Assembly (NCBI GenBank): GCA_002269645.1
Contig: NIVC01001600.1
Span: 186,001 to 250,000, forward strand
Length of the DNA stretch: 64,000 bases
Reading direction: 5' to 3'
From: Macrostomum lignano
Taxonomy: Eukaryota
The position numbers were made by a program, and so were the translations under genes. How positions within the stretch are numbered: position 1 is the first letter of the stretch; the number at the start of each line of letters is the position of its first letter. Below, one piece after another: positions 11,901 to 46,011 of the stretch. Below the pieces are notes generated by a model that worked only from the letters and a program-made list of their open reading frames with translations, made no database searches and was not told where the DNA came from.

Positions 11901-14900
11901 AGGTTCAGCTTTTAGCAATGCTGGCTGCTGCTGCTGTTGTTGCTGCTCCAGAGGCTGGTCCAGCACGCCATTGAATTGGTCAAACTCGCCCATGATCTGC
12001 TGGACAAATGTATCATCGAGCAGTGGATCGTGATCTGGTATCACGCCTGACATTAGGTCAAAGTCGGTGCCAAGCTCATCTGTGCGCAGGTCGCTCAGGA
12101 TGTCATCTAGAGGATCTAGAGGAGAAGAGGTTGTTGGGAATAAGAAATGATGGGAAAAAATTAATGACAAGAAAAACTAGTTTAAGATCTCAAATATTTT
12201 CAGGACTTAGAATATAGGTCAAATAAATAGATTTGATAAAGGATTTCTTATATTTTCTGATATCTCTTCAACAATAAGTATCCCCTGGCAGTCTATTGAC
12301 AGTCCCTTGATGGGCTTCTTACAGACACTTGATAGCAAATTTGTATACTTAGTTCTTAGCTACAGATTTATATTACTGCATATTTTAAGTTAGTATTACT
12401 CTTGCTGTGATACAATGTAGATGAATGAAGGGTATACTTAGAAATAAATATTAGTAACAATACTTATGAAAATGTAAGTGCAAATAATGTTCCTTAGCAT
12501 TCTTAAAATCACTCCTTATGCATTTATCACCTTTGGCTAATATATTGGTTTGCTACCTTCCCTATGTATCTCTTTTGCTTCTAGCTAGGCTGGAGCTATC
12601 ATTAGCTTTATTCCTTTAGTTTTATTATATACCACCTATTGCCATGCCAGCCTAGTAAATAAATGCAAATTTAAACAAAAGTTAGCCTCTATCAATTGTC
12701 ATGAATATTGCCAATTTGACTCAAGTGTTATTTGAACATTAAATTTGATTGCCATCTATCAAAGTATTTGTATTGCTTCAAAAAGTTCTATCACTATACC
12801 CATACAAAAACTCTTTATACTAGGTCAATTGATAGGGACTCAAGTGAAATTTTGAAAGTTACTTTTTAGTATTTTTCGATTAGGTCTTTCAATTAATAAT
12901 TTATAGAATTAGTGATTACTTGAAGGCATTTTGCTCTAACTTGTACTCGTTACATTATTTACTTTGTTGGTTACAAAACTTCATATCAATTTTGTTGTGT
13001 TTTACTTCTTCATCTTGACAATCTTTTCTCAATTTTGTTTAACTTTACATGGACAATACACTAAAAGACCTGATCCTGATTCCTGAATCCCAATCCCAAT
13101 CCCGATCCCAAGAAAAAAATTATTCCCGATTCCGATCCCACCCAAAGATTTCAATCCCATCCAACCTCTAGTCTCAACCTTATTACCAAAGCTAATAAAT
13201 TGACCCACTGAATACAAATTGACAACCAACCCTTTCCCATAATAGACTAAACCTTTGGTTCTCCTGAATATTTTGAACCCATTGTAAATTGAGCCAATTG
13301 AGCTTCTTATTTGGAATACTATCTTTTTATGTTATTAATATGTTTTAAGACAATATCTAGAGATTGTGACTATCAAACACAACAATCTGTAAGTTACTAT
13401 CAAGTGATTTGCATTATCAGGAAGTCAGTTGAATCTGCTACCTCAGTTATTTAGCTCTCAGTGATTATCAAAGTTATATATAGAGCCAAAGTAGTAAGAA
13501 ACTAAAAGACTAATGATACTCAAGATAGAAAACAACAAACATCTAAAATAATCCACTAATATAACTAGAATAACCAAAAACCTTTGCAACAATGTTTAAA
13601 AATTAGACCTAGATTTAAAATATAAATAGGATTATAAAAAAACATTTTTTACAATTTGGCTATGTAGTGTGAGCATCTTTGCGTTTATTTTGTTGTAAAT
13701 TGACTGCATTAGTTTCTATATTGTTATTGAATTGTTATTTTGCTTTAGTTTAGTCATGCGTTTTTTGTGTACTTTTTCTTGTTAGTTAGAATCTAAATTT
13801 GTAAACAGGTTAGAGTTAGACGCCATCTGTGACTCAGCGGAGGGTTGAGTTTTGTCTGCGAACCCCAGCTTTGCGCGGTCAGCCAATCAGAACCGGCCTG
13901 GACCCTGGCACGCGGCAAGTTTCAGTTCTACCCGGCGCCGCGGGCACAGTGCAAATCGGCTTAGCAAGCGGCCGGCCAGACGACCACCACCCGGCTTGAG
14001 GGGGTTTTGAGGGGTTGACTCTGACTATATATGAAGGTGTGTTTTGGCAATCGGATCTCACTTTTTTTCCTTCTCTCCTTTTCCCCGGTTTGTCTTGTCC
14101 AGTTCCCGGCCGGTGGCCCGACTTTTCCTCCCCTTGTTGGTTCGCGCTTTGAGGCGTTTTGATTTCATCACCCCCGGTCCATATCTTTGTTCCCGCCCAA
14201 CCGCAGTAGTCTTGTGGCGTAACGTCTACGGCAAATTCCTGTCTGAAGTCGTCGCTATCAAGCGCGGTTAGATAGAGACTGTCGGATCTGATCAAGTACG
14301 CGGCCTCGACCCCGAGGGCCCCAGTGTTACACTGAAGGGCAGTGCCGATAGAACTTAGTCGGTACTCCGTTGAACGGTCGGTTCGGCAGGGCTCTCGTTT
14401 GAGAGTAGGTTCTGGCTTAGGCCAGGGGTTAGGAGTCTTCTCCGTGGTCCTGTGTTCGGTGCCTCCTCCTTCTTCTTCAGCTGAGATCCGCTTGTCAGTG
14501 CGTGTATAATCATTATTTATTAACCGTTGTTGTCGTTTTGTCAACTCTAGTTATCTGCGCCGTTTGCTTGAATCTTGTAACTCAGCTAATCAAATTAAAC
14601 CGTCAATCAAGTTAGTTATTCTTGAAATAGGATTATCACTCTCTAAATCTTTCGGTTTGTGTTCCCTCGTGTTCTTTCTTTTCTTGTACTGTACCTGCGG
14701 CTATTGGAGAAAGACTGGTAGGACTCGCCGACCGGCGATAGGCGATTAGGATTAATAGCTTTAAAATCTTCGAACGCTCCAAGTAGGTTTGTCTAGGGCC
14801 TAAATAATTGCTCACCGTGCATGCTATTATCTAATTGCCTATTTATCACAAGTGGAGCCCCTGGGATTCCAATAGTTAGCAGGCGGCAGTTTATTGGTAG

Positions 14901-17900
14901 GCGCTCTAAGTGAGCAAGCTTAGACTAAAATTCAACGAGTCTGTTCCAGGCTCGTAGCGGCTATTTCGTCAACCACGCAGTGTGCAGCAATTCCGCATTA
15001 GGTGTGGTTTTGCGGTTGGCCAGTTACCCCAAAATACTGAATAGGATTTAGGAGTGGGAAAAATAAAATTGACCTTCTAAAACTAAAATTAGTACTTTAA
15101 TAGAAACTTGCGTGTGAAAGTAGATTTTGTTTACAGTTGAAAATTTCATTAGTGTTTATCAGCATAGTCTGCGAGTGCGCGCACTAGAGAGTACACCGGT
15201 TGAATTTGTCTCAGTGTACATTCAGTTTTCTTATCAGTTATTGCCAGTGCGAGCGAGGCGACCGATTCCGCTCAGTAGATAAAATAGAAAACTAGATTAT
15301 TGAAATTGTTATAGCCTTACAAGTTGTACTTTCTGAAGTTGCAGTAATAGAAATTCCAATTGGTTGAAACTTAGCAATGGCGCAGGACGGAGAAAATAGT
15401 CAAGAATCGAAGTCAGCTGAGATTAGGAACGAAGGCGAAATAGATGAGGCCGAACATTTGAGAACAGTAGTGAGAGAACTGCAGGATCGCATAAGAAGAA
15501 TGGAAACCGAAAATCCCGAACCTAGAGTGATTTTGAAGTCGCATAACAGCGTAGCAAAGCCAAAGCCATACCGACTTGGCTCAGATTTCGAATTGTTTCT
15601 AAGAATCTTCAACAACTACTGTCAAGGCAACAGTATAGACGAATCGGCTAAAGTGTATCAACTATTGTCGCTCCTAGACGAAGACGCCTACAAGGTTTAC
15701 ATTAACTTAGGCCTAGCGAGCACCGAATCATTTGAAAGCATCGAAAAGACTTTAAAGGACAAATTTAAGCCCGTAGGACAGAAGGAAGAAGCGAAGCTAG
15801 AGCTGATGAACCGCAGGCAGAAGGAAGACGAATCGTTAGAAGAATTTTACGACGCGCTAGTTGAATTAGTTAGGAAAGCAGGACTAGAGAGTCAGGCTAG
15901 AGAGCGAGTTTCTGAACGATTTGAAGCCGGCATAGCAAATTATAAAGTCAGGCGCGCAGTTATTGCCTATCGCAGAACGCATGAATCGAAATACCAGACG
16001 CAAGATTTACTGACTGCAGCAAAGAACGAGGAGATCCTCGAAGAACTCGCAAATCCAGGCAGTCAAAAGAATAGGAGGAAGCAGGAGGGCTCAAATACTT
16101 TGACAGCTCAAGTAGAAAAAGAGCAGAAAAAGCCAGCACCCAGCGCGGACCAAGGCCACCAGTCATTTGGACCTCAGTTTGCTTCCCCGAGCAATTATCC
16201 TTCGCAGTACCAACCGTACCAGAATTATCAGCCTCAGTTCGACTACAGGCAATGGCAACCTAGGTTCGCCCATAGACAAATGAACCCAAGCTATAGGCCA
16301 CAGGCACCAGTGCAGCCTCCGAATAGCTTTCGGCCACAGCATCACATGAGCAGTTACTCGAGACCCTATAATAGGCAGTCTTCGCCATTTGTCAGGCCCG
16401 CCATGACACGCCCGTCACGCTTTGGTCACGAGGCCGGAGGGGCCAATGACAGGTTCACACCTTCGGGGGCGAACGCGCCAAATGCGAGAAAGGCCTGTTA
16501 TGAGTGCGGCGAAGAAACTCACCTGGCTAGAGACTGCCCAGTTAGACGAAATTCTTTAAACTACCGACGGGGCGGCACCAAGGGAGGGCCAACCGCCCCC
16601 AGCCATTAAACCGATTCACTCCCAATAGAAGAGCTGCAGCAGTAGAGGACCAGCAAGACAGCTCAGTCAATGTAGAATATGGCAACTTAGTTTGGTACAA
16701 TTATTACAGAGGCTACGGATTTCTGCGAGATAGCGATAATAGAGATATATTCTTTCATGTGACTAATACTAATATAGCAACTGATTACGAAATTATGCAT
16801 TTTCTGCGCCAGAGGGCGACAGTAAAATTTATTCGCACTAACGATACTACTCATAGTAGGAAACAGAGAGCGGTCAATGTTAAAATTTGCTCAAGCGAGG
16901 AACGCAGATTAGCAGAAATTAACAAACAGAAGTCAGCGAGCTTAGCTAGACAGTCAGAGCAATTGAAAGAAGAATTAGAGAAGCGAAGCGAAGCTGCGGC
17001 AGCTCAGAGAAGCGCATTGAATAGCATAGACTTGAGACTCAGTGAGGTGGAAGGCAAGAAAGCTTCATCAGACGAACCGAAAGTAGTAAAAGAATTGTCA
17101 GAACTTAGAACCGAACTGAAGGACTTACGCCAATGCTTGGTAGGAAAAGTCCAAGAAGAGCCAGCGAAAGTAGTATTAGACAGTAGTGCAACGACAACAG
17201 AACTTAGAGCTGAACTTAGGGAAATGAAGCAGGAATTAAGGAAGTTAGAGACAGCCATCCAGCGAGATGTGGCAGCTGAAAAGAAAGCAACAGAGAAGCG
17301 AGAGAAGACCGTAGAAGCAGACATATCTAGCCAATTAGTGAATTCAGGATTATTCCTCGATAGCCAGATTAACGGACTAAGCGAAAAAATATTAGTTGAT
17401 ACCGGCGCCTCAAATTGCCTAATTGATAATAAATTATATCAACGCCTCTATCCAGCCAATCATAGTCTGAAGCCATGCTCAGTGAATATGCGATCCGCCA
17501 ATGGCCAGACTTCAAATTTATTAGGCCAAGTAGCATTGCGTGTTAGATTTGGGGACTGCGAGATTACGCACCCATTCTATGTTGCTGAAGGCTTACTAAC
17601 ATCATCAATAATAGGCATCGATTTGTTAACCAGGCATAAAATTAAATTAGATATAGCAGGAAAATCCTTAGAATTTAGTGATCGCAGAATTCCGCTTGTA
17701 ACAACGAGTGATGAAACGCGTTGCGTCCTACTGCAAGTAGTCAAGAAAGTATCTATAGCACCGATGAGCGAAATTTATGTCAAGGCTAAATGTAAAGATA
17801 CTCCAGAAACTGCAGAACTCGGCTTCATTTCAGGCCGCAGTCAAATTAGCGAGAAAGATGAGCCATTAGTAGCTAAAGCTATTACTAGATTGGACGAATT

Positions 17901-20900
17901 CGGCGAAACTTACGTTAGATTAATGAACCTGACAGAAGAGGCACAGACAATTCATAAGGATGAGGTAGTTGCGCAGTATCAACCGATGAAGGAGGAAGTA
18001 GAACTTTTCGCAATGTCAGAAACTGATTTAGAAGTAAGTGCGCAGAAGCAATCGAAGGCAGCAATTACGGTGCAAGAAGCTGATAGACTTAGGGAGCAAT
18101 TCCGCTTAAACGAGACCGATTTAAGTGAGGCTCAGAAGAGAAAAGTAATTGAATTATTACATCGTTATCAAAATATAGTTTCGAAGGATCAGTGGGATAT
18201 CGGCAAGACCCAGATGGGCGAATTCAAGATTGAGACTACCGATGAAATTCCAGTCAGAATTCCCCTGCGCAAGCAAAGCCCTGAGCAACGAGAATTTGTT
18301 AGCGGACATGTGCAGCAGCTGTTAGAGCACGATTTGATTGAGCCCTCAGAATCTGAGTGGAGTTGCCCTATAGTTCTCGCCCGGAAGAAGTCCGGAGAAT
18401 TCAGATTTTGCTGTGATTTTAGACAACTAAATAATAAGACTAAGAAGGACAGTTTTCCGTTACCGCTAATTCAAGAATCGCTGGAATCCCTGGCAGGCAA
18501 CATGTACTTTAGCACCCTAGACATGGTCGGCGCTTATTGGTCAGTGAAGGTCAGAGAGACTGACCGCGAGAAATTAGCGTTTCGAACCCATGATGGCCTG
18601 TTCCAGTGGAAAGTTTTGCCTTTCGGAGTCACGAATGGACCCGCTTGCTTTCAGCGCATAATGCAGAAGATCTTAGGCGATTACGCTTATAAGTTCGCTT
18701 TACTCTACCTAGATGATGTTATTTGCACAGGCAAGAATTTCGAAGCAATGCTAAGTAATTTAGAATTAATTTTCTCTCGATTAGCAGATGCTGGTATGAA
18801 AATCAAGCCAGAGAAGACCTTTCTGTTTCGGAAAGAAGTCACCTTCCTAGGGCACACCGTCTGCCAGCACGGTATCTATACCAGCAAAGATAAGATAGAA
18901 AAAGTCCAAACATGGCCCCGGCCAGAGAATATCTCTGAGCTGCGCGGATTCTTAGGCTTAGCCGGCTACTATCGCAGATTTATTAAAGACTTTGCGCGAA
19001 TAAGTGAGCCCTTGAATAATTTAACTAGAAAAGATGTCAAGTATAAGTGGGATGACAGTTGCCAGAAGGCATTCGATCTATTAAAGCAGAAGCTAGTAAG
19101 CGCACCTGTACTGAGCTACCCCAGGTTCGATAGCGACGCGGGACCGTTCATCCTCGATGTCGACGCCTGTGACGTAGCTATAGGTGGAAATTTATTACAA
19201 GAGCAAGATGGTGAAGAAAAAGTGATAGCCTATGCTTCGCATCCGTTAAATGAGCATCAGTTGAATTACTGCACTACGATGAAGGAAATGTTTGCGCTGA
19301 TATATTTCTTAGAACATTACCGGCCTTATCTGGTCGGCCGTCGTTTCAAGGTCAGGACAGACCACGCGGCCCTCCAATGGCTACGCAAGTGCCACGGTGC
19401 AAAAGGCATGCTAGGCAGATGGAATATGATTCTTGAGCAGTTTGATCAATTTGAAGTAATTCGAGAATGGAGGAATATGACTTTGCAATTCAGTACCGCC
19501 AAGGGATTGCCCATGGTAACGCAGACGCCCTGAGTCGCAGACCTCAGCGGGATGGTCCCCCGAAACGCTACCATGAGGAATGCCCCACTTGCAGTGCGAC
19601 GAAGACAGCAACAGTCCACTGCGGTGCAATTAATATCGATACGCCAGCAGGAATTGTAGAACTGCAGGAGAGCCAGCCAGAGTTGCTGCTGCTCAAGCAA
19701 AAGCTCAGACAGGGAGAGCCCTGTCCACCCAAGAATGAATGGGTTGGAATGAGCCGCAGTTATAAGTCATTATTTAGCGATTATGAGCAGCTATTAGTGA
19801 AAAATGACATAATTTACAGGAATTGGATAGATTCCGAAGGCCGAAAATTTGAGCAGATTGTACTGCCGGAAAATCAAGCCCTGGAGCAGCAGTTGTTTCG
19901 AGCTTACCACGATCAAATGGCTCACGGCGGTATTTCGAAGACAAAAGATTTGATTCGACAGAGATTTTGGTGGCCAAACTATTCAACGAACTTAGATAGA
20001 TATATTAAGACTTGTACTGAGTGTCAGACAAGAAAGAAATACGGGCCGAAGCCACGAGCGCCCTTAGAGCCAGAAGTCAGCAGTTACATGGGCGAGAAAG
20101 TACATATAGATTTCGCCGGTCCGTTTAACGCCACAGCACGGGGGAACAAGTACCTCCTGCTGATGGTTGATCACTTTACGGGTGGCTAGAGGTAAAAGCG
20201 CTTAGAGATTGTACAGCTGAGAGAACAGCTTGGGCCCTGTACACAGAGTGGATCACTCGGCATGGTGCCCCTGAAGCATTCATATCAGACAGAGGAACAT
20301 CATTTACTGCAGAATTAGTGAAGTCATTAACCGAAAATTTCCGAATAGATTTGCGCCATACTACTAGCTACCATCCGCAGGCAAACGGTCGCTGCGAGCG
20401 CATGGTCAGAGTAGTGAAAGATGGAATCAGATTAGCTCAGGTGAACTCAGTTTGGCATGGGATGAGGTGCTTCCGCACGCTTTGATGGTTCAGCGAAGCA
20501 CGGTCAGTGAAAGCAATAAATTTAGTCCGTTCGAATTAGTCTATGGTCGAAAGATGCGGCTACCGGTTGATGCTGAGCTTGGATTGCCTTCGCCGGAGCG
20601 CAAGACCCGTGATAAACATTTACATGATCTGTATAAGAAGTGCATGGAATCGTATAGAATCGCCAGAGAAAAGCAGCAAATATCAGTCAGGCGGCAGAAA
20701 TCTAATTATGACACGAAAGTATTCCAGCAGTATTATCAGCCAGGTGACCTGGTCTGGATAGCGAATACGCAGAATTGTTATGATACGAATAGGAAGTGGG
20801 TAGGTCCGTATCGAGTGCTTGAAGTAAGAAATAATGGAAAAAATTTAAAAATTGAACCCGGTCCAAAGGTTGACCGAATAGAGCAACCCGTCAGAATTCA

Positions 20901-23900
20901 TGACGTAGTGACAGTAGACAGAACAAAGCCCTGCTACTTGTCAGAAGAAAAGTTGCGTCAATATCGAGAAGAGGAAGCTGGAAGTGCTAGTGATGACGGC
21001 TCGGAGGAGTCAGAAAGAGTCCAAGTGGAGATTCAGAGACCAGAGAGAATTAGATTTTTGCAACGTGAGAGAGCTCACGAAGCTACTGGAAGTAATAAAG
21101 ATAGAACAGTGGAAAATACTCAGACAGCGGGCAATGCAAACCAGCAGGCGCAGGCGAGTCCTGCGGGGTCTCAGGCCAGGCAGAGTCCTGTGCGCACTCC
21201 ACCGAATTTAATGCATCTGAGCCCGGTGCACAGTACGCCCCCGCAGCGGGCAGGCATGAATAATGTTAGCTGGATACCGCGGCTGCGGAACCGCGCGGCG
21301 ATTAGACCCCCGGAACGATACGGTTATCATTGAATGGAGTCTATAGAAACGAAAGGCACTGTCGAGACGAAAATTTCAATTGTATTACTAATAGTAACTT
21401 GTCGAGACATACGCGAGAAAATTGTAGAACGCAAAAATGGAACCAGAGAAAAATAGTCAATAGAAAAAATAATAAAGACTTGCAAGTGCTGATGTTGACA
21501 CTGCAGTTGCAGGAGTTGAAGACTAACTGCTCGAGCTGCCACACCTGGTAGATTCCAGGACGCTAATGAAAGAGAAATACCATAGACGACCATAGAAAGT
21601 GTATGAAACGATTGGAAGTTGCAAATAGAAATTGAAATTGAATTGAGCCCAGATTGAAGTCGTCTGCGGTTCCATCGGCCAGTATATTCGGAATTATTAT
21701 AATGAGAAATTATTAAGGAATAAATATTATTATAAATGTTATTAAAAAAAACAGTCTTGCAGTAGAACTGACATGCGTGAATATTCGATACAAACATAAA
21801 AAATTGTAAAAGCTTCATAAAACAACACAAAAATATTATTCAAATTGCTTGAGTCAGAACACTGCTTGACACAAAAATATTAAAAACTTACAGCTAACCG
21901 ACATGTTACATGTTGCAGCTGAAATGGCTGAGCGAGAGGAAGGGGAGATTCCCGACGGCGCTACTGCGGTCCCGGAGGTGGACGTATTGGATGTGTGCGC
22001 CGCCGTCGACGACCTGGGTATGTCGGAGGCGACGGCGAAGCCATCACGAGCTGAACGGCGGCGAGAGCGGGCTCAGAGGCATTACGAACAACGACGTGCC
22101 GTGCGCCGCGCTGAACGCGAACTTGAGACATCGACGGCGCTGACGCGGCCTCAGGTTTTTTCGGCCCTGAAGCGCTACATTAGGAACGACTGGAGCCGGA
22201 ATCCGTCGGTTGATACGCTTCGCGCAAAGCTCCGGCACGTGCGGCTTGCTGGTCAGCAAGGCGGCATTCCGATGCCCGAGTTGTTCGACGCGATGGCGAC
22301 GGCCGTGTCGGTGGCCATTGCTTTCACACCGCGCCAGCGAATGCCTGACACTAGTATCGACGACATCCGCACGGCCTGTCAGGCGGAAGGGCTCGCCTTG
22401 AAGGGTCGCAACGGCACTGGGTCCGCGTCGACATCGATGGGGGCGTTCTGCCCGCTGGCCGCTGCGAGTCATTGTTCGGCGCCGGTTACCGCCGCCAGCT
22501 GGAAGAGGACGGTTCAGTAACGGTTCGCAGCGTGGCGCGTTTTCGAGTCGACACCCACGCGGCTGCTGACAGGTTTGAGTGCTTGTATATGCGCACCCCA
22601 CCACGTGCTAAGCGGGACCCGTAGTTGGTGAGCGACTGTTGTTGATGGTTGACTAGGCTTTAGTCGTCATTGGTTGTACGGTTCCGCGGGGTCGTCTCGT
22701 CAGGTTGTCGTTCGGGCAGCGGGTCAAGTTGAGTAGTTGGGCTGCGAATCGGGGCGCCGTCTGAGCCTCGTTGGGCGCTTAAATAGTTTTGTCCTGGGCA
22801 CGACAGAAAACTGCAGCCATTGGGCGGTGAATTTCGCCACGGGGATTGGTCCTGGGCAAGACCATAAACTGCAGCCAATGGGCGATAGTTTTCGCGCGCT
22901 GAGTGTTAGTCCGCCACGGGAGCGTGGGTGGAACTTAATTATCGTCGAGGCATCCAATTAGAGATAAGCGTCGTGGTTTATTGCGATAAGAATTCCGCTG
23001 TGGAGACAGTGAGGGTCGTAGCGCCCACCCTACCTTTTTTAGGAGGGGGGAGGTGCGGATAGTTAAATCAGCGAGTAATAAAATTTTGCCAGCCGATAAG
23101 GTTCATCGTAGCACGTCGAGAAGGAGTAATTTAATTAATTTGTGTAAAATGCGTCAACGCGTTATTTGTTCTTGGTGATGGGTAGCATGCGTTTCTTTTT
23201 GTTTCATTATGTTTCAAGTGCGCGAGGTTTTTGCTTTAGTTCTTTGCCGCGGGAAAGTCGTGCCATAGTTTGCGTAAACGTTGCGTTCTGTCGCGATTTG
23301 TTTCGATTTATTTATTGATTTGCTTGTGTTTTGTCTTGTCGCGTATTGAATAGTAACTTTGCTTATGTATTTGATTGCGTTTTGCCGTGTCATAGAATTG
23401 TATTTGTGTTCTTGTTTGCGTTTCATTGTCGTGTCATGTTTCGCATAGTGAATTACGTTGTGTTCCCATTTGCGTTTTTTTCCCAGTTGCTATAGTTATA
23501 CCCTTGTTATAGTGCTCTTGTTCTTGAATTTTGAATTTTGCTTTCCGCGAATGCGTTCCGTGCTGTACTGTACCAACTTGCTTACTAGGAGTAGTATGTC
23601 GTGAATATGACGCAAATTTTCATTTGTTGTAAAAGTTTTTTCTTCTTTTGTACTCTATTTCTTTTAGGAGGGGGGAGTGTAGTGTGAGCATCTTTGCGTT
23701 TATTTTGTTGTAAATTGACTGCATTAGTTTCTATATTGTTATTGAATTGTTATTTTGCTTTAGTTTAGTCATGCGTTTTTTGTGTACTTTTTCTTGTTAG
23801 TTAGAATCTAAATTTGTAAACAGGTTAGAGTTAGACGCCATCTGTGACTCAGCGGAGGGTTGAGTTTTGTCTGCGAACCCCAGCTTTGCGCGGTCAGCCA

Positions 23901-26369
23901 ATCAGAACCGGCCTGGACCCTGGCACGCGGCAAGTTTCAGTTCTACCCGGCGCCGCGGGCACAGTGCAAATCGGCTTAGCAAGCGGCCGGCCAGACGACC
24001 ACCACCCGGCTTGAGGGGGTTTTGAGGGGTTGACTCTGACTATATATGAAGGTGTGTTTTGGCAATCGGATCTCACTTTTTTTCCTTCTCTCCTTTTCCC
24101 CGGTTTGTCTTGTCCAGTTCCCGGCCGGTGGCCCGACTTTTCCTCCCCTTGTTGGTTCGCGCTTTGAGGCGTTTTGATTTCATCACCCCCGGTCCATATC
24201 TTTGTTCCCGCCCAACCGCAGTAGTCTTGTGGCGTAACGTCTACGGCAAATTCCTGTCTGAAGTCGTCGCTATCAAGCGCGGTTAGATAGAGACTGTCGG
24301 ATCTGATCAAGTACGCGGCCTCGACCCCGAGGGCCCCAGTGTTACACTGAAGGGCAGTGCCGATAGAACTTAGTCGGTACTCCGTTGAACGGTCGGTTCG
24401 GCAGGGCTCTCGTTTGAGAGTAGGTTCTGGCTTAGGCCAGGGGTTAGGAGTCTTCTCCGTGGTCCTGTGTTCGGTGCCTCCTCCTTCTTCTTCAGCTGAG
24501 ATCCGCTTGTCAGTGCGTGTATAATCATTATTTATTAACCGTTGTTGTCGTTTTGTCAACTCTAGTTATCTGCGCCGTTTGCTTGAATCTTGTAACTCAG
24601 CTAATCAAATTAAACCGTCAATCAAGTTAGTTATTCTTGAAATAGGATTATCACTCTCTAAATCTTTCGGTTTGTGTTCCCTCGTGTTCTTTCTTTTCTT
24701 GTACTGTACCTGCGGCTATTGGAGAAAGACTGGTAGGACTCGCCGACCGGCGATAGGCGATTAGGATTAATAGCTTTAAAATCTTCGAACGCTCCAAGTA
24801 GGTTTGTCTAGGGCCTAAATAATTGCTCACCGTGCATGCTATTATCTAATTGCCTATTTATCACAGCTACAACAAATGCTTTGTTGCAAATATAATTTAA
24901 CATTTTAAGTTATTTTTTTCTAGGGACAACAAAGGCAAAGCTAACCTTTTGAAAAAATAAAAACAATATCAATGAGAATTTTGTTAATTCTTTAGCATAT
25001 CTAATTTAAAAAATAGTTTATTATATTAGCTTTATATTTTATTCTAGAAATGACTTTTCATGCTAGAAATTTCCATTTTAAAAAAATACAAAAATAGAGG
25101 CCTCTTTGTATCTTGTACATTATAGTTTTTTTAAAAGCCATTTCTATGCAAAAGATAACATAGTTTGCTATTACTCTATACCCTATCATCCTAACAAAAT
25201 ATAAGAAGAATGTTTTAGATAATAAACATTTTTTAAGTTTTTTTTTCAAAGATAACTTGTATTTTTTCTTTTATCTAATATATATTTGCTTTTTATTCTA
25301 TGTATATATAAGTTATTTTATGTAATAATATTATAAATGTATATAATGTACCCCATGTAATATACCATTGCATTTAAAAGTTACCTATAAACCTGCAATA
25401 TTTCATTTGAATTTTCAATGAAAAAAGTATAAATAGTAAAGCAATATATTGTAAAAATGGCAAAAAGGTCAATTTTTATAAATATGATAGTTTTTTAGTA
25501 TACTTTTATTTAGAACTTTAGATAAAAAATTATTTTTAGTTACATTTTTCAACTATAATTTAATATTTAAGTATCAAATTGCATAAGTTTAAACTTGAGC
25601 AAGATATAACACAAAGTATTAAAATTGAAGTACAAAATTATTCTATTTTTGAACAAGCTTTTCAAAGCTTTGGCTTATATTGAAAGACATAATGGCTGGC
25701 AGTAGGCTAGCTTGGAAAAAAGATCAAAATATTTCTAGGCTAGCCTAGGAAAAGATCTGGCTATCCTGCAGAATCATTGATTTTGTTAAACTCACTGTAT
25801 ATATATTTTTTAGCCATTGATATAAAACTTGCCAAAAATGAGTATTTTCATTATGCCAATATTTTGGAAGTGTTTTGGCATTAAAATTCCATTTGTGGGT
25901 TTTTTGTCTGGTTTAACAAATGATTCTGCAGGATAGCCAAGGATCTTCTATTTATCTTTCTTATATAGACCCTATGTTGCCTGGAAAAAGATCATCTTTG
26001 ACTAAATGAATTAAATATCAAAGTGTCAATGTAGAAAATAAGCAAAACACATATTTGCTTATGTTTGGTATTCACTTAAAAATGACAAGAAGTTTAAATT
26101 GAATTTTTTCTCCCAATTTAAATTACATGAATTATAAATTTATAAACTTCTTGTTTTTTATTATATCATATTATATATATAATATTATATATATTATAAT
26201 TTATTTATAAATTGAATTATATAATTTGAATGAATGTATATAAGCAAGATCAACAGAATATCTTTTCCCAGGCTAGCCTGGAGATATTTTGATCTTTTTT
26301 TCCAGGCTAGCCTACTACTGCCGTAGGGTGCACCATTGAAAAGAAAAAATGTTTGTACTTACACGACAT
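2915..26369 (-). CDS. SREBF: Sterol regulatory element-binding protein (bHLH-ZIP, membrane-bound), multi-exon; C-terminal end unresolved
   Basis: Exons with GT-AG borders and consistent phases: 12115-11373, 7866-7519, 5850-5718, 5468-4714, 4201-3587, 3256-2915; tentative exon 1 at 26369-26363 (ATG TCG T|GTAAGT). Basic region SHTVIEKKYRQSINNKIDEL has the SREBP-diagnostic Tyr. Also helix2/zipper LSKSLVLKRTIDRIHLLERENESL, TM1 with an NP motif, luminal RALK, TM2, and C-terminal DPESCWWAATA resembling SREBP DPVAKWW. Confidence 0.92.
3400..3535. repeat. Intronic 31-bp minisatellite (SREBP intron 3586-3257)
   Basis: About four copies of CTGAGGATCTGGGAGGCTGGTGGCCCAGCAA. Confidence 0.9.
4237..4695. 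repeat. Intronic tandem repeats: 34-bp unit x3, then 21-bp unit (GGTAAT[A/G]C[C/T]AACAAAGCGGTA)
   Basis: Direct repetition filling the SREBP intron 4713-4202. Confidence 0.95.
5483..5690. repeat. Intronic 26-bp minisatellite GCATTGGAGACTTGGGTAATGTGATG
   Basis: About eight copies filling the SREBP intron 5717-5469. Confidence 0.95.
6765..7445. repeat. Intronic 20-bp purine-rich minisatellite GGGAGAGGGTAATGAATAAG
   Basis: Direct repetition inside the SREBP intron 7518-5851. Confidence 0.97.
7915..11300. repeat. Intronic ~31-bp satellite with a 1484-bp higher-order duplication
   Basis: Unit GAGACACCCCTGAAGACACAGCAGATCTCA(TC/GC)T; ORF-track entries recur at +1484 (7973/9457, 8562/10046, 9125/10609). 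Confidence 0.97.
13663..14850 (+). repeat. 5' LTR (1188 bp)
   Basis: Direct repeat of 23678-24865; contains CCAAT (~13883) and a TATATAT box (~14025). Confidence 0.97.
14853..14869 (+). other. Primer binding site candidate TGGAGCCCCTGGGATTC
   Basis: Starts with TGG 2 nt after the LTR; resembles a gapped complement of a tRNA-Thr-type 3' end (inference from recalled tRNA sequences). Confidence 0.6.
15377..16609 (+). CDS. gag: Gag (410 aa) with one CCHC zinc knuckle
   Basis: ORF after the leader; capsid-like RRQKEDESLEEFYDAL; CYECGEETHLARDC knuckle. Confidence 0.95.
   Translation: MAQDGENSQESKSAEIRNEGEIDEAEHLRTVVRELQDRIRRMETENPEPRVILKSHNSVAKPKPYRLGSDFELFLRIFNNYCQGNSIDESAKVYQLLSLLDEDAYKVYINLGLASTESFESIEKTLKDKFKPVGQKEEAKLELMNRRQKEDESLEEFYDALVELVRKAGLESQARERVSERFEAGIANYKVRRAVIAYRRTHESKYQTQDLLTAAKNEEILEELANPGSQKNRRKQEGSNTLTAQVEKEQKKPAPSADQGHQSFGPQFASPSNYPSQYQPYQNYQPQFDYRQWQPRFAHRQMNPSYRPQAPVQPPNSFRPQHHMSSYSRPYNRQSSPFVRPAMTRPSRFGHEAGGANDRFTPSGANAPNARKACYECGEETHLARDCPVRRNSLNYRRGGTKGGPTAPSH
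16546..21333 (+). CDS. pol: Pol: cold-shock domain - coiled coil - aspartic protease - RT - RNase H - integrase; interrupted by three apparent 1-nt deletions
   Basis: Protease LVDTGAS; RT YLDD; RNase H DVDACD...TDH; integrase HHCC (YHDQMAH...CTEC), D (VHIDF), D (SDRG), E (RCERM), GPY motif. Frame changes at ~19465, ~20181 and ~20450, each -1. Confidence 0.93.
16555..16623 (+). promoter_or_regulatory. -1 programmed ribosomal frameshift signal (U UUA AAC, 7-nt spacer, GC stem, possible pseudoknot)
   Basis: TTTAAAC at 16555-16561 in X XXY YYZ register of gag; the pol frame is -1 and open from 16546; stem GGGGCGG (16569-75) pairs with CCGCCCC (16593-99); loop GGGAG can pair with CTCCC (16619-23). 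Confidence 0.85.
16672..16890 (+). other. Cold-shock domain (Y-box/CspA-like OB fold) at the Pol N-terminus
   Basis: Hand translation of the pol frame: EYGNLVWYNYYRGYGFLRDSDNRDIFFHVTNTNIATDYEIMHFLRQRATVKFIRTNDTTHSRKQRAVNVKI; matches CSD G-x-V-x-WFN, RNP-1 (RGYGFL), RNP-2 (DIFFH), V-x-F and A-x-NV. Confidence 0.85.
21924..22520 (+). CDS. Accessory ORF3 of the LTR element (~198 aa; unknown function, not env-like)
   Basis: GC-rich ORF between pol and the 3' LTR, preceded by a branch-point-like CTAAC and TTGCAG acceptor (AG at 21917-18); no signal peptide or TM segment; Arg-rich helix. Confidence 0.65.
   Translation: MAEREEGEIPDGATAVPEVDVLDVCAAVDDLGMSEATAKPSRAERRRERAQRHYEQRRAVRRAERELETSTALTRPQVFSALKRYIRNDWSRNPSVDTLRAKLRHVRLAGQQGGIPMPELFDAMATAVSVAIAFTPRQRMPDTSIDDIRTACQAEGLALKGRNGTGSASTSMGAFCPLAAASHCSAPVTAASWKRTVQ
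23041..23052 (+). other. Internal duplicate polypurine tract
   Basis: T-run followed by AGGAGGGGGGAG, the same motif as the 3' PPT. Confidence 0.75.
23666..23677 (+). other. 3' polypurine tract
   Basis: T-run then AGGAGGGGGGAG immediately before the TG of the 3' LTR. Confidence 0.92.
23678..24865 (+). repeat. 3' LTR (1188 bp)
   Basis: Copy of the 5' LTR at offset 10015. Confidence 0.97.
25698..26322. mobile_element. MITE-like non-autonomous element with imperfect ~65-bp terminal inverted repeats
   Basis: GGCAGTAGGCTAGCTTGGAAAAAAGATCAAAATATTTCTAGGCTAGCC at the left is mirrored at 26260-26322; inner IR GGCTATCCTGCAGAATCATT / AATGATTCTGCAGGATAGCC. No TSD seen. Confidence 0.6.
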
Positions 26370-26980: not shown

Positions 26981-27749
26981 GCAAACTACGTCTTATGCTA
27001 ATCAGTGGCTCGATCCACCGACGACAAATAAGGCCAAATTTCATGTTATCACCTAACTTATAACATCAAATATTCCTTTCGGTCGTGCGATTTGATTGAA
27101 CAAGTGTGAATGGAGCCAATTAAAGCCAAAAATCATGTCAATACATGTCATTTTAATCGGCGGATGACTGGATCTAAATGGGCAATTTTCACATTTTCAA
27201 GGGGCAATTTTTAATTGCACTTTAGAATGCTATCAATAATAAAGGTATAGGCTTTCATGTTTTTAATTCAGATCCAATTCCGCCTGTCGATCGTGCCCGG
27301 CCTCGATCCTGCTTGTACACTGTAATCGGTGCGGTGGAACTCTACGCCGATTCGTTGACTTAAAAGTCTGAACGGCAAAACAGATCGTTTGAAAGTGCTT
27401 CAGGCTTATAGTTCGACCAGCAGGTCCTAATCGACAATTAACAAGCGTTATTCGAACGCTAAAGAACAATTACTGTTACGTGTACAAATGCAAATTTTAC
27501 GAGGCAATAATTGCATGCACTTGTACATTAATGTACATGTATTCGGCAGTAAATCTTTGACATTTAGTTTGTTTTCGGGATGTTCAATATTATATTCTTT
27601 TATAACTTAAATATGGATGGGCACAAGCTGGAGACGCATTTAAGTGGAGAAGATGTTTGTAAAGTACAAACATCTGTTTCTCAGGTTGTGAAGTTCATTC
27701 TTCCAGTTTCATTGAAATTCAAACAGCGCCGCTAGAGTTGACTCGTCGA

Positions 27750-29681
27750 TCAGCCGCAGCTGGTTGATGCGAACCTGACGGACACGAAGCCCTGATCGCC
27801 AGTGCAGCTGCTGCTGGAGACGCAGCCGTCCAGGCAGAAGGAGCCACCGCCGCCGCCGATGTGACTGCGGCCGACACCCGCGCCGCCGCCACTGAAGCCT
27901 CCGCCTCCGCCAGCAGCGCCTTTGATCGAGCCGCGCATGCAGCCGCAGCCGCCGCCGCCGCCGAAGCCGCCGTGGCAGGCGCTGCCACCACCGGCGCTGC
28001 CGCCGACCCAGCCTTGGGCCCGACTGCCGCCTCGTTCGCCATCCCAGGAGCTCCGCCTAGGGTTGACTGCCCTGCCAAGCCAGCCGGCGCCGCAGCCTCC
28101 GTGGTCAGAGTTTGATGGGGTGCCACTCGGATTGTTGGAGCCCGGCTGGCCGTTGATGCCGCCGAAGCCTTTGTTGTTCTCAGCTCCGATGCTGTCCGAG
28201 CCGTTAGTTCCCACTTGTCCTGGCCTTCCTGCAGTTTTTTGTATTACTATCGTACAGAGAACTATTATAGCACGATGCACAATAGTTACGGAAACTTAAT
28301 GCCCTGTAGAAACCACAATTAGTTATACCGACATATCAATATCAAACTATAATACGGTTTTGGAAAGTTTTTATCAGACAGTCCAGTTTTTACCGAAAAT
28401 ATATACATTACGGAGATAAGAGCTGCATGTTTTCATGCTATCAGCACAAAATTTATTAATGCTTTGAATGGCAGGCAGATCCAATTTTCATCTTATTATT
28501 GATATGTCTTGCCTTTCTTTTGTATAGCTCTATTGATATTCTTAGAGCCTTTTGTTTACGTCCTGTGCCTAAACATCATAAAAAATGGCACAACTTGATT
28601 CATTAATTTTATGAATCTTTTTTATCATGCTTTGCTCATTGACAGTAACGAAATGAATTTTTTTTAAGCTGCAGTTATTAAGCATTCAAACAAATGGGAC
28701 AGGCTTTTAAATAAATATGGCTTATTGGACTAATTTATCAAAAAAACCTGCCTCCTTAAAAGTTCGAGAAACATTCTTGCTCACCATCGTGTCCTATACC
28801 GGCGCCACCGCCCCCGCCGGCAGCCAGCAGCAGCAGCTGGTCGTTCGTCCGGTACACGAAGCTGCCGCCGCCTCCGCCGCCTCCTTCGCTGCTCAGGGAG
28901 GTCGAGCCGCCTGTCTGGCCCACAACGATGCTCAGCTGGGTGCCGGCCGTCAGGTTGACTCTGGCGCTCACCTGGGCTCCGGGGCCTCCGAAGTTCATCA
29001 GGGCGTTGTTGCCTCCTCTGGCACCGGCTGCCTCAATGAGGTAGCAGCCGCTAGCGGGAGCCGTGAAGGTTTCGATCGATCCGTTTCTGCCCGAGCTGCT
29101 GTCTGTGGGAGTTTATGATGAAGCTTTGACTGCAACAATTGTCGCACAGACATTTTCAAACAATTCCATATCTCGTGACTCACTTCTCAGCAGCACTTCA
29201 GCTGACGTCAAACTCATAAGGTTTTGGTCAAACTCTTCCGCTTTCCACAAAGTCACAGCGCTATCGTCGGGCGAGCCGAGCTGTATCGTCACGTGACTTC
29301 CGTTTGGACCGGCGGGCTGCCCCAATGACTCATTGTTGATGCTGACTGTCCGACAGACTCTGGCGGTCTTGTTCAGCTCGACGACAGCGCAGCCTCTGAG
29401 CTGGCACAGCAGCAGGCAATGACTTTCCTGAGCGACATCGTTATTGACGAACAAGCTGATCACAGAATCAATCAGCTCAACGGAGCTGCTGGTGACGAAT
29501 CGATTGAAGCGTTTGACGCTCAGAACGTTTTTCACTGAAATTCGAGCGAGTATAAAAAGCAGTTCACACATGCACATCCGCATGCACTCTCGTAGGAGTA
29601 GCAGGGGAGGCACGAAGCAACTAGACCGTACTCACCGCTTACTTGAATAAGCACAATGGCGAAAATTACCCAGAATTTCAT
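27750..29681 (-). CDS. Secreted protein (397 aa): signal peptide, PAN/apple-like Cys domain, ALK/LTK-type glycine-rich domain
   Basis: Exons 29681-29636, 29534-29184, 29102-28785, 28228-27750, all phase-1 GT-AG introns, giving one open frame. MKFWVIFAIVLIQVSV signal; CLLLCQLRGC..C; YLIEAAGARGG, GGGGGGGSFVY, LLLAAGGGGGA, GGFGGGGG, GGGGGFSGG motifs. Confidence 0.85.
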
Positions 29682-30398: not shown

Positions 30399-30950
<552 letters not shown>

Positions 30951-31511: not shown

Positions 31512-32956
31512 ATGTCTATCCTGAGCAAAGCTACTCTCGGAGCCGTCTTGTTGGGTCTGGTGCTGTGCTGCAGCGTTAGCGCCATCCCAGTATACAAACC
31601 CAGATGTAAGTTAACACGCCTCGACTTATTGTTGACTGAAACTGACCTTTGGAATAAATGAATTTTTATAACCCGCAGTTGCTGACTCCGGCAGTTCCGG
31701 TTCCGGAAGCTCCGAGCCTCCAATGCCTCCTCCGATGCCAACTGGTGAGGCTCCGGGTGAGTGGCTCAGAAATTTGACAGTATTCTTCCTAGCTATAAAG
31801 ATGCATATAAGTGATTTGACAATTAATTGACGCCTTCTTTACAGCCAGCGAAGCCCCACCACCGTTCATCCCAGGCGTCGGAATCCGTGAGTTTCTTTGG
31901 AGCTAAGTTTTATAGTTGCTCCTAAACAATCAAGTGTTCTAAAACGTTATAAAGTTATTTTGACAATTATATTTATTGACTTATTATACTTGCAGCCAGC
32001 GACGAGCCGCCAACTTATTCCCCAGACATCGGAATCGGTAAGTCTTTCGAAGCTGATATTCTTAGCTGTTCCTTTACAATCATGCGTTTTTAACATGCAA
32101 AGCTGTTTTGACGATTGGACCTAATTACTACTTAATTACAGCTAGCAATGCGCCGCCACCGTTCATCCCAGGCGTCAGAATCCGTGAGTTTCTTTAGAGC
32201 TGAGGTTCACAGTTTTTTCCTGAACAATCAAGTGTTCTAAAACGTTATGAAAGTATCTTACTAGTTGTGAAGTTTGCTAACTGTAATATGTTTTTGACAA
32301 TTGCATTGATTGACTTGCTTACAGCCAGCGAAGAGCCGCCAACTTCTTTCCCAGGATTCGGAAGTCGTAAGTTTATCGGAACTGATTTTTGAAGTTGTTA
32401 CTGAACAATAAAGTGTTCTAACATGTTTTTAACACGTTAGTTTTTGACAATTGCATTGATTAACTTGCTTACAGCCAGCGAAGAGCCGCCAACTTCTTTC
32501 CCAGGATTCGGAAGTCGTAAGTTTATCGGAACTGATTTTTGAAGTTGTTACTGAACAATAAAGTGTTTAGCACATGTTTTCAACACGTTAGTTTTTGACA
32601 ATTGGATTTATTGACTACATTCTTACAGCAAGCGAAGAGCCGCCAACTTCTATCCCTGTTGTGCCGTACGGAGGAAATGGTGAGTTTCTAAGAGCAAACC
32701 ACGAGTATGAAAGGTTTCTGACATTCATGCTGGATTGAATCCGAACTTCGAGGCCTATCAAGCGTAGATAATCCGTTTCCACCGAATTCACATTGCCAAA
32801 TAATCCGCAGCCATGAACGAAGAGCCGACTTCTCCGCCAGGTGCTGGATTTGGAAGTAAGTGCTAAAGCAGTTAATTTTATATATGATAGACAGCAACAG
32901 ACTTTGTGCATGACACTCCGTTATCCGCAGCTCCACTGCCGGTAGTCCGCGGCTGA
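31512..32956 (+). CDS. Secreted Pro/Ser/Gly-rich repeat protein (163 aa) encoded by 10 exons, mostly 42-nt symmetric exons
   Basis: Exons 31512-31605, 31679-31744, 31845-31886, 31996-32037, 32142-32183, 32325-32366, 32475-32516, 32629-32679, 32811-32855, 32931-32956; all nine introns GT-AG phase 1; signal peptide MSILSKATLGAVLLGLVLCCSVSA; AATAAA at ~33055. Confidence 0.85.
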
Positions 32957-41235: not shown

Positions 41236-41407
41236 GAGGGAAAGAGCGGTTTGGATGCAAAATTGTTAAAATAATTAGACAGGCAAACATTATGACGGCT
41301 CAATGCACGTCAGGGCAATGCAATGCTTAGCAAAAAAGCTTTAAAACAATTCAGCCACCATTAAAACCATGAAAACTAAAAGCACAGCAAAAGTTATTCG
41401 GGTTGGT

Positions 41408-45242
<3,835 letters not shown>

Positions 45243-46011
45243 CTGTAGACGCCAGGAAGGTCGTGCATGCAGATGAAAATGCAGGTACAGATCCTTACTT
45301 ACACTGCACATTGGCTGCCTAAGACACCTTGAATTAAAGCTACCAAAGTACATAGATCAGGAGTCAGACAACTCCGGCTCGCAGTCTCACTATCCGGCCC
45401 TGGGGTCCTTGGAAACTTGACAATATTAATCCGACAGCTCAAGATTCGTGTCTCTGCTCAGCGCTCTTCACTCCCCACTTCCCTACTCTCCCCTTCCCTA
45501 CTCTCTCCTCTTCTCTACTCTCTCAAAGTTTGCTGACCCCTATAATAGATTTTAAAAATCTTCAAGATCCAAAAAGTAAAACAAACAAACCAGAATTACG
45601 CTGTAACTATAAAAATTAATAACTTTTATTTGGACGGACGTAATCCTATAATATTTTCGTGATTTTTTAGTTTTGAAAAAATGAAAACACTGACGTGCAA
45701 CAAAACGTTTTGAAAGAGAGTCCCAGCTCAGAAATCGAACGGGAACTCAAAAAAAGACTGCACAGCAGGGAGCAAATGGAATGTAAGACAAAAAGTGCGA
45801 GCCTGAAAAATTTACGGAAACAATTTACATTAAACCTACTGTTAGTAGCAACATTTAGTAGTTTACTTAGATTTAAATTGATACAATGTAAAGAACGAAG
45901 ATTGATTGAAAATTTCGATTTGGGGGGTTGTCTTACATCCATGAGGGCCAATCCCCAAATCCACAGAAAGTCGTTAAAAAGGTCGTTAAAAAAGTCACAA
46001 GAGTCGGCTAA

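Follow-up and report, generated by a model that had tools for sequence, protein, structure and literature searches.

Protein variation by exon skipping is the defining functional property of the micro-exon genes (MEGs) (PMC4350168, PMC4015677), an organization that has been treated as restricted to platyhelminths (PMC4350168) and proposed as a gain of the parasitic Neodermata, the question of a pre-parasitic origin being left explicitly open (Laumer 2015, PMC4398949). The subject of this paper is a gene of comparable layout at nucleotides 31512–32956 of a 64-kb stretch of Macrostomum lignano contig NIVC01001600.1; the whole of this stretch, 64,000 nucleotides in length, is referred to below as the window. 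A first-pass annotation of the window had likened the gene to the MEGs of Schistosoma and had assigned it to an apparently non-schistosome animal, which is correct, Macrostomum being free-living, though of the same phylum as the schistosomes. The locus is probably a real, lineage-specific protein-coding gene, and its MEG-like appearance is accounted for most simply by the tandem copying of an exon-plus-intron unit.

The micro-exons of the MEGs as originally described by Berriman in 2009 and DeMarco in 2010 are said to measure 6–36 bp and to constitute approximately 75% of the coding sequence. The operational criteria of Olson et al. 2020 (PMC7653826) define micro-exons as shorter than 70 nt and divisible by 3, and call for at least seven exons, of which at least half are micro-exons, with a run of at least four. 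A later survey gives a range of 6–81 bp for MEG exons, most being of 15 bp, with introns of 0.1–5 kb (bioRxiv 10.1101/2023.06.21.545858). One member, MEG-26, contains an internal duplication of its exon-length pattern (PMC5825161).

Repetition of whole exon-intron units is known from other secreted proteins. In SmPoMuc of S. mansoni a 27-bp exon is repeated in tandem with a conserved intron of ~1 kb, the product carries secreted Ser/Thr/Pro-rich repeats, and variation arises by recombination (PMC2576457). The protein repeats of the spider Flag silk gene are likewise genomic exon+intron tandem repeats, the introns of which are homogenized no less than the exons (PMC2576457). The introns of tropoelastin are all of phase 1:1, its exons are cassette-like, and the protein possesses hPGhGG motifs (PMC12554196).

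Organization of the gene

The gene model, which was read from the sequence and rebuilt by script, comprises 10 exons on the + strand, from an ATG at 31512 to a TGA which ends at 32956. GT[AG]AGT is the form of all nine donors; the nine acceptors all read CAG and follow a pyrimidine-rich stretch, and all nine introns lie in phase 1. Introns 1 to 9 measure 73, 88, 109, 104, 141, 108, 112, 131 and 75 nt, taking any residue modulo 3. The lengths of the repeat exons (42, 42, 42, 42, 42, 51 and 45 nt) change solely by multiples of three. Branch-point-like yTnAy motifs, mostly TTGAC or TTAAC, are present in introns 1–8, whereas the final 49 nt of intron 9 have none. Splicing yields an open reading frame (ORF) of 504 nt specifying 167 amino acids and ending in VVRG and the stop codon, with stops present in frames 2 and 3.

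This anatomy – phase-1 exons in multiples of 3, a signal-peptide-like exon and the VVRG terminus – is that described in the first-pass annotation, and the sizes given there for the repeat exons (five of 42 nt, one of 51 and one of 45 nt) were recovered as well. The exception is exon 2, to which 66 nt had been assigned. This length results from an internal donor (ctg/GTGAGG) at 31745, while the 78-nt version uses GTGAGT, in line with the other donors. The frame is kept in either version, the difference between them being the residues GEAP.

Structure and origin of the repeat array

The repeat unit consists of an exon together with its intron. The array extends over nucleotides 31757–32810 (+) with periods of 146–183 bp, and Tandem Repeats Finder (TRF) reported a 150-bp period over 32290–32656 with 93% matches. 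Exons 6 and 7 are 100% identical, and the introns downstream of them (I6/I7) show 95% identity; for the type A exons 3 and 5 the value is 86%, with 88% for their downstream introns (I3/I5). Between A-type and B-type units the exons share 67–71% identity and the introns ~79%, the latter value being taken from gapped alignments and somewhat inflated. A multiple alignment revealed a conserved 3′ block in introns 2–7, TTTTGACAATTG..ATTGAC..YTTACAG, which carries the branch-point-like TTGAC/TTAAC. The SSEPPM of exon 2, exon 8 with its additional 9 nt, and the MNEEPTSPPGAGFG of exon 9 represent diverged copies of this unit. Elsewhere in the window the repeat exon has no paralogue. The identity of exons 6 and 7, the order A-B-A-B-B-B and the regular exon+intron period, all three of which had been noticed at first reading, are upheld by these comparisons.

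Since the introns are repeated along with the exons, the units follow the order A-B-A-B-B-B and TRF recovers a period, the array is best attributed to tandem duplication. It would have grown by duplication of a unit of ~150 bp, exon and intron together, through unequal recombination. The order of the units indicates that an A-B pair was duplicated, followed by duplications of B units, and the sequences imply that the last of these would be very recent or else homogenized. As the unit is symmetric, the reading frame is preserved whenever a unit is gained or lost, be it in DNA or by splicing. The main source of length variation would be genomic, in the form of copy number differences between alleles or homeologues, and splicing would by default include all exons; both the duplication mechanism and constitutive splicing are what we infer from the array. 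The best explanation, to which we assign a probability of roughly 0.6, is that the locus encodes a lineage-specific, secreted, disordered repeat protein and that unequal recombination between exon+intron units lengthens and shortens the gene.

This organization may be compared with those introduced above. As in SmPoMuc, tandem genomic units each contain one small exon and a conserved intron (units of 146–183 bp; intron identity 79–95%). SmPoMuc differs in having ~1 kb units with microsatellites, up to 20 of them, in a multigene family, whereas the Macrostomum gene has 6–8 units of ~150 bp without microsatellites, no paralogue in the window and no homology to SmPoMuc. The greater identity of the introns than of the exons between A and B units (~79% versus 67–71%) recalls the Flag silk gene, which is, however, a huge arthropod gene with large exons and GPGGX motifs, and shows no homology. 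With tropoelastin the gene shares introns that are all of phase 1:1, the alternation of two exon types, and PG motifs (IPGVGI, FPGFGS, PPGAGFG). Tropoelastin, on the other hand, is a vertebrate protein of ~700 amino acids with Lys-rich cross-linking exons, while the Macrostomum protein is small and acidic and has no homology to it; alternating hydrophobic and Lys-rich domains were not found in the mature protein, which contains a single Lys and lacks KA/KP motifs. The Macrostomum gene joins a known architecture, that of secreted proteins built from exon+intron tandem repeats, with a sequence unrelated to those of the earlier members.

Table 1. Coordinates of the exons and putative flanking signals of the repeat gene in the window
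Feature	Position	Strand	Description
Exon 1, coding part	31512–31605	+	94 nt; start codon and signal-peptide-like MSILSKATLGAVLLGLVLCCSVSA/IPVYKPR; phase 1 end; donor gat/GTAAGT
Exon 2	31679–31756	+	78 nt (66 with weaker donor after 31744); Ser/Gly linker and first degenerate SSEPPMPPPMPT repeat
Exon 3	31845–31886	+	42 nt; type A repeat (A)SEAPPPFIPGVGI
Exon 4	31996–32037	+	42 nt; type B repeat (P)SDEPPTYSPDIGI
Exon 5	32142–32183	+	42 nt; type A repeat (A)SNAPPPFIPGVRI; 86% identity to exon 3
Exon 6	32325–32366	+	42 nt; type B repeat (P)SEEPPTSFPGFGS
Exon 7	32475–32516	+	42 nt; exactly as exon 6
Exon 8	32629–32679	+	51 nt; B-derived repeat (P)SEEPPTSIPVVPYGGN (+9 nt)
Exon 9	32811–32855	+	45 nt; diverged repeat (A)MNEEPTSPPGAGFG
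Exon 10, coding part	32931–32956	+	26 nt; (T)PLPVVRG and TGA
Putative TATA box TATATAA	31412–31418	+	~94 nt 5′ of ATG; candidate core promoter by sequence reading
Putative polyadenylation signal AATAAA	33055–33060	+	~100 nt 3′ of stop codon; by sequence reading

The predicted protein

The N-terminus has the charged/hydrophobic/small-residue layout of a signal peptide, with K6, a hydrophobic core (ATLGAVLLGLVLCC) and then SVSA/IP; the hydropathy maximum is 2.65, over residues 11–21. The features of a signal-peptide exon, as claimed previously, are thus present in exon 1 on a heuristic reading of hydropathy, and the product is predicted to be secreted. The mature chain of 143 amino acids (~14 kDa; pI 4.05) contains 27.3% P, 13.3% S, 12.6% G and 8.4% E, with P+S+T amounting to ~45%. 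It possesses three Arg residues, one Lys and six S-x-(E/D) motifs, and is without Cys, dibasic sites and N-x-S/T. This composition is mucin-like (PTS-rich) and points to intrinsic disorder. Elastomeric disordered proteins obey a proline/glycine rule of thumb (2P+G > 0.6), by which this protein would lie in the elastomeric range.

The 14-residue repeats reported in the first-pass annotation are real, and each sits on its own phase-1/phase-1 exon. The repeat comprises a conserved acidic half, S-(E/D)-E-P-P-T, with S-x-E motifs and Pro-flanked Ser/Thr, and a variable, more hydrophobic half with a PG turn, represented by FIPGVGI, FPGFGS and PPGAGFG. We infer that the product is a component of the extracellular matrix or of a gland secretion, of the mucin-like or elastomer-like disordered kind. 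A collagen-like protein was ruled out, there being no G-X-Y repeat.

Comparison with micro-exon genes and the question of exon skipping

The gene resembles the schistosome and other neodermatan MEGs in its 5′ exon, which encodes a signal peptide by the hydropathy heuristic, in the run of small exons of lengths divisible by 3 which make up most of the coding sequence (CDS), and in its short terminal exon. The predicted product, like theirs, is small, secreted, probably disordered and lineage-specific, and the internal duplication of the exon pattern is reminiscent of MEG-26. Counted in the manner of Olson et al. 2020, the gene has 10 exons, seven of which are micro-exons (those of 42, 51 and 45 nt), or eight if exon 2 is taken at 66 nt, in a run of seven to eight. 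The share of these micro-exons in the CDS is 61%, rising to 76% when exon 2 is included. At 42–51 nt they exceed the 36 bp said to have been the original upper limit. They lie inside the 6–81 bp of the later survey (10.1101/2023.06.21.545858).

The differences are of several kinds. The Macrostomum exons (42–51 nt, and 66/78 nt for exon 2) compare with MEG exons of mostly ~15 bp, and the introns, at 73–141 nt, are not the long introns of 0.1–5 kb found in MEGs. The Macrostomum exons are all recognizable copies of one unit, and no similarity to described MEG protein families was detected in the protein database search (E≤10) or in Pfam. Furthermore, Macrostomum is free-living, so that the immune-evasion rationale is inapplicable. 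The proposed likeness to Schistosoma MEGs therefore holds for the architecture and for the definition of Olson et al., and fails for sequence similarity and for intron size.

A true MEG-type system, in which combinatorial skipping of symmetric exons generates a pool of secreted variants from one gene, is the alternative that survives best. Of the subsets of the eight internal exons, 256/256 are in frame and without a premature stop, as had been asserted for any subset, and they specify 192 distinct proteins; the codons at the junctions are always Ser, Ala, Pro or Thr, and each of the introns adds a premature stop when retained. The agreement with the operational definition (PMC7653826), the shared layout of a 5′ signal-peptide exon, small symmetric exons and a short 3′ exon, the in-frame alternative donor of exon 2 and the platyhelminth host all speak for such a system. 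Frame symmetry is, however, a necessary by-product of tandem exon duplication: an array that arises in this manner survives only if its exon is symmetric, and the symmetry is therefore not independent evidence for skipping. Where introns are short and splice signals uniformly strong, splicing is generally intron-defined, and constitutive removal of the introns is expected. On this general ground the 73–141 nt introns, together with the consensus donors and acceptors and the branch-point-like motifs, favour constitutive splicing and predict the inclusion of every exon. The introns and exons of schistosome MEGs are of other sizes, as given above, no similarity exists to any MEG protein, and the 64 kb contain no paralogue cluster. 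We consider a MEG-type system at this locus unlikely, and prefer constitutive splicing of an array that would vary in the genome.

A broader form of the same idea is that Macrostomum possesses genuine MEG-type genes, in which symmetric mini-exons produced by exon+intron duplication are combinatorially skipped, and that these predate parasitism and serve a non-immune purpose. This is, if anything, slightly more doubtful. If it were true, sexual conflict acting through seminal fluid would be one conceivable purpose, and the tuning of adhesive or mucus properties another.

Evidence for a functional coding gene

The + strand of the window has 25 GTRAGT sites, nine of which lie inside the 1.4 kb of this gene. 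Both strands were searched for chains of phase-1, stop-free exons whose lengths were multiples of 3 in the range 27–90 nt, with YAG and GTRAG at their borders and 50–250 nt between them. The result was one chain of eight, at this gene; elsewhere in the window, on either strand, no symmetric-exon chain was longer than two. The GC content is 0.55–0.69 in the exons versus 0.28–0.44 in the introns, with 0.52–0.58 in the exons of the neighbouring SFXN5 gene. When the five 42-nt exons are aligned, third codon positions make up 5/8 of the variable columns in the conserved N-terminal half of the repeat, and in the C-terminal half the variable columns are spread evenly over the codon positions (4/4/3). 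Together these coding signatures are good, though not overwhelming, signs of translation, the number of independent substitutions being small.

Two other gene models were considered. That these exons belong to a larger gene with upstream coding exons is ruled out by a TGA lying in frame 27 nt 5′ of the ATG and by the TATA box, and a gene on the minus strand is ruled out by the lack of an exon chain there.

The 167-amino acid protein was screened against a database of 5.8 billion proteins, schistosome proteomes included, and among 1521 word-sharing candidates no match was found at E≤0.01 or at E≤10; the search may list proteins only to ~1.75 times the length of the query (with a 150-amino acid query every listed match was ≤263 amino acids), and a longer, fused gene model holding this sequence could consequently be missed. 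The protein matched no Pfam family and has no sequence relative in PDB. JGI metagenome contigs contained no exact match to a 22-mer taken from exon 6, and no peptide or DNA string of the gene was found in the supplements of the Macrostomum prostate-transcript paper. The evidence thus far favours none of the sites proposed in the first-pass annotation (mucus, adhesive, seminal fluid) over the others. Scans of the window for Rfam families and tRNAs were empty.

Several points weigh against a functional secreted-protein gene with invariant splicing. Divergence between units is similar in exons and introns, so that selection on the coding sequence is weakly shown, and the independent events between units are few. 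The gene is known here from DNA sequence alone and its expression is predicted. The signal peptide that the N-terminus suggests was judged by eye and by a hydropathy heuristic. That the gene is missing from the protein database carries no information on its expression, since even the housekeeping SFXN5 of this species is represented there solely by frameshifted UniProt models, with no identical fragment, and the database seems not to cover the worm's transcripts. Finally, the sequence is compatible with regulated exon skipping.

A non-functional locus, that is, a young or decaying tandem repeat, a proto-gene or a pseudogene which is unexpressed or untranslated, would agree with the similar pace of exon and intron change, with the orphan status of a gene for which a homologue was found nowhere searched, and with a window that is extremely rich in tandem repeats. 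Against such a locus, exons 1, 2, 9 and 10, which are unique, keep the phase as well and bear the same consensus splice sites; exon lengths change by multiples of 3 alone, and premature stops occur in 0/10 exons, while frames 2 and 3 have stops. The signal-peptide-like start, the upstream in-frame stop, the TATA box and the AATAAA, the sharp contrast in GC between exons and introns, and the third-position bias in the conserved half of the repeat likewise argue for a gene. We regard a non-functional locus as improbable, more so than a MEG-type system, and retain the reading as a secreted repeat protein.

That the repeats are excised from a precursor as small amidated or bioactive peptides, with the C-terminal Gly as amide donor, is very improbable: a signal peptide, repeated short units and the VVRG terminus would suit such a precursor, but no dibasic or monobasic-plus-Gly sites flank the repeats of a mature protein with so few Arg and Lys residues, the repeats are acidic, Pro-rich and not peptide-like, and a lone C-terminal Gly is weak evidence. 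Amidation, the basis for which is this Gly, is unsupported, and a neuropeptide precursor is ruled out by the lack of basic cleavage sites.

Genomic neighbourhood

Upstream, a (TAAC)138 microsatellite (30399–30950, 98% pure) ends ~560 bp 5′ of the ATG and lies between the repeat gene and a divergent gene at 27719–29681 (−). The latter, with its ATG at 29681, has a signal-peptide-like start (MKFWVIFAIVLIQVSG) and a secreted-looking product. One of its exons matches Pfam ALK_LTK_GRD, the ALK/LTK glycine-rich domain, above the cut-off (E 3e-8, 34 bits). A further Gly-rich ORF continues at 27750–28280; when both Gly-rich pieces were joined no Pfam match was obtained.

Downstream, ~8 kb contain no evident coding sequence, after which follows the gene for sideroflexin-5 (SFXN5) at 41400–45260 (−). 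Its 150-amino acid exon at 44036–44488 (−) matches Pfam SFXNs (E 1e-55) and shares an identical block of 72 residues with the M. lignano UniProt entry A0A1I8HZJ3, and three further exons show 94–96% identity. The UniProt models A0A1I8HZJ3 and A0A1I8F5J... diverge in their flanks, which look frame-shifted relative to the window. The SFXN5 introns each hold a long tandem array: (GTA)212 at 44514–45149, a 46-bp unit present 12 times at 43478–44038, and a 24-bp unit present 26 times at 42466–43084. A cluster of 13 GTRAGT sites on the minus strand near 43.5–45 kb was rejected as a gene, as it coincides with the 46-bp minisatellite at 43478–44038, the reverse complement of which contains GTAAGT, and is probably repeat.

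The window also contains a complete LTR retrotransposon of the Ty3/Gypsy type at 13663–24865. Its two LTRs of 1188 bp (13663–14850 and 23678–24865) are 100% identical with TG...CA ends, and there is an apparent 4-bp target duplication (GCTA). The ORFs specify gag (15377–16609) and protease/RT/RNase H (16759–19533), with the integrase split over several ORFs. The element looks like a very recent insertion. An SREBP-like bHLH gene lies at ~3500–12200 (−), with a Pfam HLH match in the ORF 6739–7692 and a poly-Q-rich N-terminal exon at 11343–12170. Within its span are huge minisatellites, among them a 33-bp unit repeated 103 times (7912–11301) and a 20-bp unit repeated 32 times (6752–7382). The window as a whole is very rich in minisatellites with units of 17–46 bp (38 TRF rows; several arrays of 1–4 kb), and these produce strong local GC/AT skews and many long spurious ORFs.

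Significance

A search of the literature found no paper in which micro-exon genes in Macrostomum are reported as a finding. If exon skipping is negligible here, the locus is an ordinary repeat-expanded gene for a secreted disordered protein. Annotation will probably overlook or wrongly model genes of this type, whose exons are short, whose sequence is of low complexity and which lack homologues; the UniProt models of the neighbouring SFXN5 are frameshifted. A free-living macrostomid gene which falls within the operational definition of a MEG provides a concrete data point on the origin of these genes. It also shows a possible route to a MEG-like architecture, in which duplication of a symmetric exon together with its intron confers frame-safe modularity for free.

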